From contig JBLDXI010000013.1 of NCBI GenBank assembly GCA_047495785.1, forward strand, positions 3,286,001 through 3,350,000: a DNA stretch of 64,000 nt, given 5' to 3'. The DNA is from Lepidodermella squamata. Its lineage: Eukaryota > Animalia > Gastrotricha. The position numbers and the translations under genes were made by a program. Shown piece after piece: positions 42,029 to 49,691 of the stretch; the first letter of the stretch is position 1; every line of letters begins with the position of its first letter. The notes under the pieces were generated by a model. That model saw nothing but the letters and a program-made list of their open reading frames with translations, was not told the DNA's origin and ran no database searches.

Positions 42029-43276
42029 ATGTTATACGTTACGCAGTTGCTATCTAGATACAACTTCATCTTGGGCTTCGGCGTTTGTCTGCCTTTCCTG
42101 ATATTTATTTATTTCGGTCATGTGAAGCTAAGCCCCAGCTGGATTCAACCTCGCGTACTTGCTGAAGCAGAAGTAATCAGCTTTGGTGACAACAAGATCA
42201 TTTTCTCTGAAGTTAGCAGCAGTTTCCTTGATAGCGTTAAATTATCATCTAACGTCTCTTTTCCATTGATTGCGGTCAAGAGAAGTGAAATCTTCAAATC
42301 TTTTATCGAAAAAGGTCTCTCCTTCAAGCCAGTTGTGTTTGACCCTAATCATGATATTCTTGTGCTGTTGCACATTCAAAAAACTGGCGGTAGCGCGTTT
42401 GGTCGATTGCTAGCTCTTGAAATTGCTAATTTGACTTGCACCCGACTTGAATCTGGACGCAAGCAGCATGACTGCACGGTGGCCTCATCAGAAAATCCTG
42501 ATCGTCGTATCTTGTGGAACTTTAGCCGTTTTTCAGTTGGCTGGGCTTGCGGGTTGCATGCAGATTGGACCGAGCTGAAAGCTTGCGTGGAAAAAGTCCT
42601 TATCTCCAGAGAATCCTTCAATCGAACCCGAAGATATCATTATGTGACTATGTTGAGAGACCCCGTTTCTCGTTACGTGAGCGAATGGCGTCACATAGCA
42701 CGCGGTGCTACCTGGGCCGGCGCAGAGCTACGTTGCAATGGAAGACAAGCTTCTTTGGCAGAAGTCCCTTTTTGCTACGATGGCAATAATTGGCGCGGAG
42801 TGACTCTCTCTGAATTTATCAACTGTGAACACAATCTTGCCAACAATAGGCAAACTCGAATGCTCGCTGACCTGACTAAGATCAATTGCTACAATAAAAC
42901 CGGCATGAATCCTGTTTTACGGTCTGAAATAATGTTGAGATCTGCTCTAGACAATCTTGCTTCCTTTTCATTTATTGGTCTTTCTGATAACCAGCGGCTC
43001 ACTCAGTGGCTGTTTGAACGTACGTTTACGAATCTTCATTTCCGAGTTAATATGACTCAAAAAGAAACTAAGGCTGAGAGATATTTGCCTACTTTGACGT
43101 CTTTTGAGCTTCATGAAGTGCGTCGTGTGAATAGTCTCGATCTGATTTTGTACGATTTTGCCAAATCTCTATTCTTCGAGAGAATAGCTGCTTACGGTAA
43201 ACATTACGGCGATTTTGTTACTGGTAAAATTCGTGAAAGTAACGAATTTGATGCCGACGAAAACGAAGATTATTGA
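42029..43276 (+). CDS. HS6ST: Heparan sulfate 6-O-sulfotransferase
   Basis: N-terminal TM, LHIQKTGG, FSRFSVGWACGLHADWTEL, TMLRDPVSRYVSEWRH, NLANNRQTRMLAD; intronless CDS. Confidence 0.96.
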   Translation: MLYVTQLLSRYNFILGFGVCLPFLIFIYFGHVKLSPSWIQPRVLAEAEVISFGDNKIIFSEVSSSFLDSVKLSSNVSFPLIAVKRSEIFKSFIEKGLSFKPVVFDPNHDILVLLHIQKTGGSAFGRLLALEIANLTCTRLESGRKQHDCTVASSENPDRRILWNFSRFSVGWACGLHADWTELKACVEKVLISRESFNRTRRYHYVTMLRDPVSRYVSEWRHIARGATWAGAELRCNGRQASLAEVPFCYDGNNWRGVTLSEFINCEHNLANNRQTRMLADLTKINCYNKTGMNPVLRSEIMLRSALDNLASFSFIGLSDNQRLTQWLFERTFTNLHFRVNMTQKETKAERYLPTLTSFELHEVRRVNSLDLILYDFAKSLFFERIAAYGKHYGDFVTGKIRESNEFDADENEDY

Positions 43277-43542
43277 AATCAATCATTAACTCTGGTGCTG
43301 AATTACTCTTGTTTTGTTTTGAACAGTATTATTCTCAATGAGTATCTTGCCTCAAACTTTGATATTATAGTTCGCGACTCTTCCTTTCTATCTTGATGCT
43401 ATTCGTATTTTATACTTTCAACTTTTCTTTATTACCGATTTAGCTTGTTTTGTGAAGTTCATTTAATAAACTCAAAATTCGATTTGACAATCAGGTAACT
43501 TGTTTGTCTGATCTTACTAGGTTTTTTTAATGAAATAATCGA

Positions 43543-47272: not shown

Positions 47273-47492
47273 GCCTCGTGAGACGTCATGTCCGGTCTAT
47301 AATATTTATAAACAACATCATATAGCTTGCCTCGTATTTTCCTATAGTAGTATAAAACCCATCAAATTTTGATCGACGCAAATGCGATAATAAACACCCG
47401 CAAATTACATTGTTTTCTTTCTTGTGTGTTTTATATAGAACGCGTTGTTTACATTTTACATTTTCGGAGGGAGATTGAGGATTGAATAATCA

Positions 47493-49691
47493 AGTGAGTG
47501 CTTTTCAATATTCTTTGCCATTGGCATTTTTTCACCGTAAATTGGACGAATAACTCAACAAGCAATCAGTAAATGGAAGCGGAATAGGCGATTCTGTAGA
47601 GGAATTCTGAGAAGAAAACATCAAATAAAAAAATCTGACAATGACATGTACCGTAAATAATAGTGAATTTCAAGACCGGTTTTGAAAAAATCTTGGCTTA
47701 TCGAGCAAATTATTTTTCTAGCAAAAGTTCTGTGATAGTACCTGATAATTATCTAAATTATGAATTTCTATTCCTGAAAATTTGCAAAGAACAAGGAAAT
47801 TTGCTGAAAATCTGCAAAGAGCCCACCATCGCCTTGAAAATCGTAAATATAATCGAATTTTGCAAATTATTTCTCAACCAATTTCTCTCAGAAAGACTTG
47901 GGATTGATTGATATCAAAAATATCTGTAACGGTAAATATAATATTAGAATACCTAAATATTTCGGTCATGACCGGGTTAGAATAACCGATGAATGCCTGA
48001 TGAAATTAATAAGGACTCTTGAGATGAAATGAACATTGAAATCCTAGACCAATTTTATGGGAAGTGAGATCAAATCCTTTAAAAAATTCAAAAAATTAGC
48101 CAAGGTCGAGACTAAATTCGGGAATATACTTTTTGTCTCCGTTGAGCTCTCAGTAGCCGACTCATTGCTAAAATGTTCACTTTCCTCGGCTGAATATAGG
48201 AAAATTCATAAGCCAATTGACATGAATACGAATTTTTGAGCAATATGAGGCTTTTGATATTTACTAGATATTCCCTATACTGTTTTCAATTTCAAAATGT
48301 AGTGTCACGGTTTCAATTGCTGTCTGAAGAGGGATTTCGCGTCGACGGCCGTCGCGCTAATGAACTTCGCCCGATCAACGCTAAATTAGGCGTTCTGCCC
48401 AACGCCGACGGCTCCGCTGCCTACGAAGCCGGTGGAACGCGGCTAATCGCCGCTGTTTTCGGTCCTCACGACGTTTCATCAGCTGCAGGCGGCCGAGGTA
48501 CCGGTGGCACTGGTGCAACTTCGAGCGGGGCGTTGCAATCCGACGCTTGTGTCGTTCAGTGTCACTGTAATATGGCGTCGTTTTCTCAACCTGACCGGAA
48601 ATCTCAAAGGACAGACAGAAAGGCCTACGCGATCGCCGACTGCTTATCGCAGGTGTTCCGGGGAGGTGCGACTATCCATGTCCATTTGTATCGCGGATGC
48701 CAAATTGACATCAATATTCAGGTAAATTTCGATGAAGAGTAATTTTTTACCCGATATATTTTACAGAAAGACTAATAAATAAAGAAGTTCTTTGACGACC
48801 TGATGACCCTTATTCACTGTCAGAGTTGTTCGATTTCAGAAAGAAAGTGGTGCATGAAAATAGGAAATTTTGCCATTTTTTCCTTGGACATTTTTTAGCA
48901 ACATTTTCCCCCCACTTAGTAGCAAAAGATTGAATCTCCTATTTTCGTATTCGATTCGTTTATTGATCGTTCGATTTCGGAATCAAAACATTCTGAAATA
49001 AAAACTTCTGATGAGTGATTCCAACAAACAAATCATTCACCAAAATTTACCTAAATAATCTTGATTGGGGTCGCAATATAATTAGGTATAACTGGTTCGC
49101 TCTAAAGGAAGTGTCGCCACCCTGGGTTTAAATTCTATAATATCGTTGACCAACTGAAAAATCACAATTTAACCCCAATTCACGAAACACCTTCGCGGCA
49201 CTTGATGACGAGACGTTTACCTGGCCTTCCGCTTCAACAACAAAAGAAGTGATCCGTCCCTGTGACCTTGGTTCAGTTCATAGGTTCAGCAGTTATTTTG
49301 ACTAATCAGCTATTTTTCGCTTTCACTTCAGATTCTCGAAGCCGACGGAGCTGTTTTGGCCGCAGCTTTCAATGCCGCAACTCTAGCCCTAGTCGACGCC
49401 GGTATCGCAATGTCCTGCATGCCCGCCGCCGCGTCAGCCGCCCTAGCTGCCTCTCAAGCGCCCCTCATGGACCCGACTAATCAAGAAGAAATCCAGGCCG
49501 GTTCTTGGCTGGACATCGTCCTCGAACCGCCATCAGGCAGTTTCCTCTACGTCGGACTCGGTTCACGCTTACACCGCGACCAACTGAGCCCGTTGCTTGA
49601 AACGGCTGCGAAAGCTGCAAACGAAGCGCACGCTGTTATGGCTGAAATTGCCCGAAATCACATTTCGAACGCTATCCCCACTAATGAATAA
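47493..49691 (+). CDS. EXOSC4: Exosome complex component RRP41
   Basis: (M)SRFQLLSEEGFRVDGRRANELR...ADGSA..GGTRLIAAVFGP; QIDINIQ|ILEADG..AAAFNAATLALVDAGI; exons 48303-48721 and 49332-49691; ATG probably split across an intron (A at 47493). Confidence 0.92.

Follow-up and report, generated by a model that had tools for sequence, protein, structure and literature searches.

A probable spliced-leader operon of five housekeeping genes in the gastrotrich Lepidodermella squamata

Introduction

How are five unrelated housekeeping genes expressed when they follow one another head-to-tail on the same strand in a tightly packed cluster? This question is raised by a locus of the gastrotrich Lepidodermella squamata, which we analyzed within a stretch of 64,000 nucleotides (nt) of its genome (assembly GCA_047495785.1, contig JBLDXI010000013.1, positions 3,286,001 to 3,350,000), hereafter referred to as the window. 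Between positions 42029 and 49691, the plus strand of the window encodes, in this order, a heparan-sulfate 6-O-sulfotransferase (HS6ST), the Polycomb protein EED, the ribosomal protein RPL14, a short-chain dehydrogenase/reductase (SDR; in the following, the dehydrogenase) and EXOSC4/RRP41. In nematodes and sea squirts, operons are cut apart by the trans-splicing of a leader onto the individual mRNAs. An earlier interpretation of the letters alone (the sequence-only reading) had proposed that the present cluster is likewise an operon resolved by spliced-leader (SL) trans-splicing, and that it belongs to a lineage in which operons may not have been described.

In the following, we describe transcript contigs in which leaders encoded elsewhere in the genome are joined to two of the downstream genes, the SL RNA genes that supply these leaders, and the signals that separate the five genes. 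We then weigh how far these observations support a single operon, and compare the cluster with the known systems.

Results

Leaders on the downstream genes

Contigs from three public runs (X1, X2 and X3) were aligned to positions 43100-48800 of the window (5,701 letters). X2 is DNA and is evenly covered, introns included. X1 and X3, which stem from two separate studies, behave as RNA, because their contigs show GT..AG joints (removing 408, 59 and 809 nt), poly(A) tails and a near-zero intron depth.

At two of the four predicted acceptors, both RNA data sets carry leaders that are not encoded at the locus. The dehydrogenase contigs of X1 and X3 align from 46252 and have the same 25-letter leader, CTGCGATTGAATATTAAATTTTCTG, ahead of this position; it belongs to a family that we refer to as SL-A. 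The RPL14 contigs of both runs align from 45073, likewise with non-genomic leaders ahead, and the leader in X3 reads TGCGAATTTGATTTGTGTCTA, an exact match to the genes of a second family, SL-B. As the last two letters of the leaders are likewise AG, the alignments already begin with the A of the acceptor AG. Neither SL-A nor SL-B is present in the window, and none of the contig joints is a cis-splice joint that ends at 45074, 46253 or another junction acceptor; cis-splicing from donors in the upstream 3' untranslated regions, the competing explanation named in the sequence-only reading, was therefore not seen. At RPL14, that reading had favored the AG at 45086 and had listed the one at 45074 as an alternative, but it is the latter that is used in both runs.

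The X1 leader ahead of 45073 has the consensus GCGACGAAATAGAAAAGTGTCTA. We considered it as a separate leader and rejected it, as it has no genomic match with up to three mismatches; it was built from two contigs with an agreement of 0.67, and most likely mixes two variants of SL-B.

Since RPL14 carries SL-B and the dehydrogenase SL-A, so that two families occur on downstream genes, there is no sign of a dedicated SL2-type leader, as far as these two genes go.

The leader genes

The expectation that the genome should hold SL RNA genes was borne out: the leaders derive from genuine SL RNA genes that carry GT donors and are located elsewhere in the genome. SL-A (...ATATCTGCGATTGAATATTAAATTTTCTGAG) has 542 genomic matches, compared with 0 for the reversed control. 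Many of these recur every 8.46 kb, and the repeated unit (L025, G000:C22:8000-16700) is the ribosomal DNA (rDNA) repeat. It contains the small subunit, 5.8S and large subunit genes on one strand, and the 5S gene together with two SL RNA genes on the other. Of these two, the SL-A gene, which is followed by GT, is situated ~700 nt upstream of 5S; the second leader gene, ATATCTGCGTATCGATTTTCGAATTCTAAG followed by GT, lies between the SL-A gene and 5S and has AAUUUGAGG where an Sm-binding site was looked for.

SL-B (AACCATCTGCGAATTTGATTTGTGTCTAAG) has 48 genomic matches, many of them in tandem arrays of ~680 bp on several contigs. In the 11 copies that we compared, the exon and the GGTATGTATC donor are invariant, while the region in the middle varies. 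The 5' ACC pairs with the GGU of the donor, and a conserved terminal 3' stem is followed by UUU. The arrays are found at G000:C17:1137307-1142024, C17:1742002-1749900, C19:1472968-1476089, C54:2837691-2839199 and C11:1405522-1412437, and their variants are limited to a single 5-nt patch of the leader (TTTGA, TTTAA, TTATA, TTAAA or ATAAT).

Furthermore, complete SL-A or SL-B leaders are fused straight to open reading frames (ORFs) at about position 1500 in L003, L008, L010, L011, L012 and L014 (G000), and three of these leader-fused ORFs carry CCHC zinc knuckles (gag-like). The fusions account for part of the 542 SL-A matches; judging by their sequence, they would fit retroelements that carry leader sequences or use them as insertion sites.

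Signals and spacing at the junctions

The features of the cluster are compiled in Table 1. The hexamer and AG coordinates of the sequence-only reading proved exact throughout, including the three AGs at 45074, 45086 and 45090, but its near-constant spacing of about 50 nt did not hold up. Between the last letter of the hexamer and the G of the acceptor, the four junctions span 50, 38, 53 and 44 nt when RPL14 is counted at 45074, a range of 38-53 nt that is narrow rather than near-constant. By contrast, the expected intercistronic gaps of about 30 nt agree with what was measured between poly(A) site and acceptor, namely 34 nt (46219 to 46253) and 26 nt (47412 to 47438); for HS6ST-EED and EED-RPL14, gaps of ~31 and ~19 nt are predicted. 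Wherever RNA supports a junction, which is the case for three of them, the first AG past the cleavage site serves as the acceptor. The start codons follow closely, with the ATG of EED at 43543 (23 nt after its acceptor), that of RPL14 at 45118 (44 nt) and that of the dehydrogenase at 46277 (24 nt).

A scan of the window for the pattern hexamer-AG-ATG-ORF returned ~8 sites, compared with 3 in the reversed control, and has low power. Taken alone, it is weak evidence, and it is the RNA that carries the case.

The junction between HS6ST and EED has two further peculiarities. A donor-like AG/GTAAC is present at 43493-43498, in the spacer just past the predicted HS6ST cleavage and before the EED acceptor, and a two-codon upstream ORF (ATG AAA TAA, 43530-43538) lies past the predicted acceptor of EED and ahead of its start codon.

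Table 1. Genes and processing signals of the five-gene cluster, in window coordinates
Feature	Position	Strand	Basis and remarks
Candidate promoter element TATAAAG	41848..41854	+	sequence; 88 nt upstream of first candidate acceptor
Candidate trans-splice acceptor of gene 1 (HS6ST), ttgttcttctctttAG	41921..41936	+	sequence; 93 nt before ATG
Gene 1, HS6ST (heparan-sulfate 6-O-sulfotransferase)	42029..43276	+	single exon, 415 amino acids (aa); Pfam Sulfotransfer_2
HS6ST poly(A) signal AATAAA	43465..43470	+	sequence; cleavage predicted near 43489
EED predicted trans-splice acceptor AG	43519..43520	+	pyrimidine-rich AG, 50 nt after hexamer
Gene 2, Polycomb protein EED	43543..44961	+	single exon, 472 aa; PDB EED chains (human), E 1e-62; WD40
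EED likely poly(A) signal ATTAAA	45031..45036	+	sequence; cleavage predicted near 45055
RPL14 trans-splice acceptor AG in use	45073..45074	+	leader-bearing contigs in X1 and X3
Gene 3, RPL14 (ribosomal protein L14e)	45118..46109	+	exons 45118-45456, 45865-45918, 45978-46109; Pfam Ribosomal_L14e
RPL14 poly(A) signal AATAAA	46195..46200	+	sequence; 19 nt before observed poly(A) site
RPL14 mRNA poly(A) site, observed	46219	+	X3 contig end, then 18 non-genomic A
Dehydrogenase trans-splice acceptor AG	46252..46253	+	34 nt after RPL14 poly(A) site; leaders in X1 and X3
Gene 4, short-chain dehydrogenase/reductase	46277..47272	+	single exon, 331 aa; Pfam adh_short
Dehydrogenase poly(A) signal AATAAA	47389..47394	+	sequence; 18 nt before observed poly(A) site
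Dehydrogenase mRNA poly(A) site, observed	47412	+	X3 contig end, then 23 non-genomic A
EXOSC4 exon 1 acceptor AG	47437..47438	+	26 nt after dehydrogenase poly(A) site; start derived from contig depth
EXOSC4 exon 1	47439..47493	+	55 nt: 5' untranslated region and A of start codon; GT..AG joint 47493 to 48303 in X1 contig
Gene 5, EXOSC4/RRP41	48303..49691	+	coding exons 48303-48721, 49332-49691; Pfam RNase_PH, RNase_PH_C
Predicted terminal poly(A) signal of cluster, AATAAATAAA	49724..49733	+	sequence

The two ends of the cluster

At EXOSC4, the start codon itself is interrupted by the 809-nt intron (A/TG), and the spliced reading, MSRFQLLSEEGFRVDGRR, is the usual RRP41 N-terminus. The start of its first exon can be estimated from the depth of the X1 contigs. 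In the bin 47302-47492, the mean depth is 76.6; the dehydrogenase contig (depth 177.7, end at 47359) accounts for 58 nt of it, and the remainder corresponds to ~56 nt at the depth of the spliced EXOSC4 contig (77.1). This contig should therefore start at ~47438, the predicted acceptor. We trust this arithmetic because it reproduced two HS6ST/EED bins exactly. Exon 1 thus presumably begins at ~47438, with no leader of this contig among the loose ends listed. With such a split start codon, the true start will be missed by gene finders. In annotations of this genome, genes as tightly packed as these will be fused or mis-started unless acceptors and poly(A) sites serve as gene borders, a danger that EXOSC4 illustrates.

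At the other end, the ~2 kb upstream of the candidate promoter element are devoid of long ORFs. A relative described below has an equivalent acceptor-like site 101 nt ahead of its HS6ST ATG. A C/A-rich telomere-like tract, cctaacacctaactcccaaaacccaaaacccaacacccaac, is found at 41575-41615, ~300 nt before the candidate promoter.

Conservation in a relative

The closest homolog of EED, with 64% identity, is encoded on a metagenome scaffold of 13.5 kb (L028). Within 5.6 kb, this scaffold contains all five genes, with order, orientation and tight junctions unchanged, at protein identities of 61-71%. After RPL14, the distance from AATAAA to the first pyrimidine-rich AG is 53 nt, as in the window, and after the dehydrogenase it is 36 nt (44 nt in the window). 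EXOSC4 again has a short non-coding exon directly past the AG and a start codon split A/TG (5061/5113), with an intron of 51 nt in place of the 809 nt in the window. Likewise, intron 1 of RPL14 has 58 nt (3484-3541) compared with 408 nt (45457-45864) in the window, and intron 2 (59 nt, 45919-45977) is absent from the scaffold. A scaffold gap hides the HS6ST-EED junction.

When aligned between the window and L028, the spacers between the genes are too diverged to reveal conserved elements beyond the signals themselves. The architecture of the junctions is thus conserved, even though the spacers can no longer be aligned. A search for a third species with the HS6ST protein returned only the same metagenome scaffold.

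Gene identities and further features

The gene names HS6ST, EED, RPL14 and EXOSC4, as assigned in the sequence-only reading, were confirmed, whereas its fourth name, HSDL1, could not be established. For HS6ST, the best structural match is HS6ST3 (PDB 5t03, E 5e-80), and a protein search yielded hundreds of named HS6ST homologs, the nearest of which are spiralian and ~50% identical. The RPL14 and EXOSC4 proteins were searched one exon at a time. The two RPL14 introns are documented by GT..AG joints in transcript contigs, which bridge 408 and 59 nt. EXOSC4 matches RRP41 in the PDB (E 8e-20), and the loose end of its contig at 48721 resumes with the sequence of 49332. The dehydrogenase is a classical SDR with an intact YSASK motif, for which the PDB yields generic SDR matches only; these do not settle whether it is of the HSDL1/HSD17B12 type. 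Exact look-ups of the EED, dehydrogenase and HS6ST proteins found no further transcript contigs on record.

According to the ORF map, the gene after the cluster is convergent, on the minus strand. Rfam detected nothing on the window, on the long introns (including no small nucleolar RNA) or on the SL-B arrays, and no transfer RNA genes were found in the window. The two arms of Lsq-Mir-Novel-6, a microRNA described as novel for L. squamata (PMC6468455), each match the genome at a single site, without mismatches, on a shared contig and strand and 102 nt apart, in line with the published drawing; the genome is therefore that of L. squamata or of a very near relation.

At 46468-46552, 48346-48439 and 48556-48625, two versions of the sequence occur at about half the depth each, both in X2 (DNA) and in X1 (RNA). 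They diverge locally by up to ~8%, at sites that are spaced by multiples of three only, which suggests that the differences are probably synonymous. In the parthenogenetic L. squamata, the two versions could be either divergent haplotypes or collapsed duplicates.

Discussion

One operon or several transcription units

Taken together, we consider it likely that the five co-oriented genes form an SL-type operon in L. squamata. The proposal of the sequence-only reading is thereby supported, with both data sets showing leaders at two of its four acceptors, and contig depth placing a third. Leader addition at the RPL14 and dehydrogenase acceptors was observed directly, and it probably extends to EED and EXOSC4; we further infer that the genes are co-transcribed from one promoter. 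Transcription would most likely start upstream of HS6ST and run through the cluster. Each upstream mRNA would be cleaved and polyadenylated 18-19 nt past AAUAAA, and the first pyrimidine-preceded AG, 26-34 nt past the cleavage site, would take a capped leader of ~30 nt by trans-splicing. The leader would be donated by an SL RNA whose gene lies elsewhere in the genome, and the downstream mRNA would thereby be released. A U-rich tract of ~25 nt may combine two functions, that of the downstream cleavage element and that of the acceptor's pyrimidine tract, and such a double role would couple 3'-end formation and trans-splicing physically. The X1 contig depths of HS6ST, EED, the dehydrogenase and EXOSC4 are broadly alike (46-290), with the proviso that contig depth is a poor measure of expression and does not serve to rank genes.

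Several observations weigh against this reading. No contig covers 43409-43530, the interval that includes the 3' end of HS6ST and, at 43520, the predicted acceptor of EED; the X1 contig of EED starts at 43531, without a leader. At the other end of EED, the contigs stop at 44995 and 45019, short of the 3' end of the gene. No RNA molecule that spans two genes was seen, which assembled contigs cannot show. The canonical Sm site (AT4-6G) was not found in the SL-B RNA, whose consensus fold has UCUCAG as its single-stranded linker, not AU4-6G. The collinearity with L028 extends to three further downstream genes, one of them on the minus strand, so that the conserved synteny does not speak specifically for an operon. 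Finally, RPL14 far exceeds its neighbors in contig depth, by factors of ~40 (X3) to 1000 (X1) relative to EED upstream and of 40-200 relative to the dehydrogenase downstream, which fits an internal promoter or a very different mRNA stability better than a unit with a single promoter.

This last point leads to the most serious alternative, which we nevertheless judge unlikely. It holds that the genes are trans-spliced and tightly packed, yet do not form one transcription unit, as RPL14 would have a strong promoter of its own. This promoter would be situated in the 113-nt tail of EED or further upstream, within its 3' part, the resulting short outron would be replaced by the leader, and only some of the neighbors would be co-transcribed, for instance RPL14 with the dehydrogenase and EXOSC4. 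Internal promoters in operons are indeed known from Caenorhabditis elegans, and the depth of RPL14 (X1: 20,000-58,000, against 46 for EED; X3: 270-400, against 10 for EED), as well as the missing contig coverage of the EED 3' end and of the HS6ST-EED junction, would be in keeping with this arrangement. However, these depths are subject to the above proviso on contig depth, mRNAs for ribosomal proteins are very stable, and inspection of the sequence between the EED stop and 45074 revealed no TATA-like element. Moreover, read-through from a strong RPL14 promoter should make the dehydrogenase and EXOSC4 far deeper than HS6ST and EED, whereas they are only ~2-5 times deeper.

That no trans-splicing takes place here is close to refuted. 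In this reading, the leaders would be assembly chimeras, library adaptors or exons cis-spliced from upstream, and the distance between hexamer and AG would be due to chance; it can point to SMART adaptor sequence at some X1 contig ends and to the pattern scan, with its ~8 sites compared with 3 in the control. However, an identical 25-nt leader is joined to one and the same AG in X1 and X3, and the leaders are distinct from the SMART oligo. They match hundreds of genomic sites, among them SL RNA genes with GT donors, they do not occur in the window, and no cis joint was seen to reach the acceptors.

Comparison with known systems

An SL operon at this locus represents a known mechanism in a phylum for which we found no published description of it, in agreement with the supposition of the sequence-only reading. 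In full-text literature searches, no paper connected gastrotrichs to spliced leaders, trans-splicing or operons, and none contained the leader strings; the L. squamata genome paper (PMC11660948) contains no mention of operon, intron or trans-splicing.

As to the spacing, intercistronic medians of 31-33 nt, with a cut-off of 60 nt, have been reported for Oikopleura and of ~1 nt for Ciona, and gaps of ~100-112 nt for Caenorhabditis (PMC7986045), while the median is 99 nt in Schistosoma mansoni (PMC12582326) and the peak ~100 nt in Macrostomum lignano (PMC8629364). The claim that the gaps of the present cluster are shorter than those of C. elegans is therefore correct, but they are not unprecedented, as those of Oikopleura and Ciona are as short or shorter: they match Oikopleura and set no record.

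The cluster resembles the operons of Oikopleura dioica in several respects. In both, unrelated genes are co-oriented with very short gaps (31-33 nt there, 26 and 34 nt here), and the genomes are compact and intron-poor; O. dioica reserves no leader for downstream genes, and the two genes with visible leaders give no sign of such a leader here. On the other hand, O. dioica belongs to another phylum, its leader is unrelated in sequence, and it is the only one there, whereas L. squamata has at least three families (SL-A, the second rDNA leader and SL-B).

The SL2-type operons of C. elegans share the formation of an upstream 3' end followed by leader addition close by; C. elegans also has more than one SL RNA gene, with linkage to 5S in one case, and ribosomal-protein and housekeeping genes in operons. 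They differ in their gaps (~100-112 nt compared with 26-34 nt here) and in their use of leaders: SL2 is reserved for downstream genes, while SL-A and SL-B both occur on downstream genes. The Rfam models SL1 and SL2 gave no match. The operons of Ciona intestinalis and the SL1-type operons of C. elegans are tight and resolved by a non-specialized leader, as the present cluster seems to be, but they have no intercistronic region, in contrast to the 26-34-nt spacer between poly(A) site and acceptor in the gastrotrich.

Flatworms are the phylum thought to be closest to gastrotrichs. Both S. mansoni and M. lignano use SL trans-splicing and have part of their genes in operons, and their leaders are of similar length (35-36 nt compared with ~30-33 nt here). 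In contrast to the gastrotrich, their gaps are longer, and their leaders end in AUG rather than AG. Sequence similarity of the leaders was considered and rejected as evidence of homology: local alignment shows a shared CTGCGAA with M. lignano, and TGATTTGT and an AACC start with S. mansoni, but 15-20% of shuffles score equally well (p 0.15-0.2). It seems doubtful that gastrotrichs and flatworms inherited SL trans-splicing and operons from a common ancestor; the similar leader length, the operons in both groups and the short shared words, whose similarity is not significant, are compatible with it. If it were true, the conserved five-gene unit, including its ~30-nt gaps and its several, apparently non-specialized leaders, would be an early-diverged form of one system and not another independent invention. 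SL trans-splicing and operons are patchily distributed across animal phyla, and whether they have a single or multiple origins is an old question. A gastrotrich operon adds a phylum beside the flatworms, and the question therefore becomes testable by comparing the SL RNAs and the operon content of both groups.

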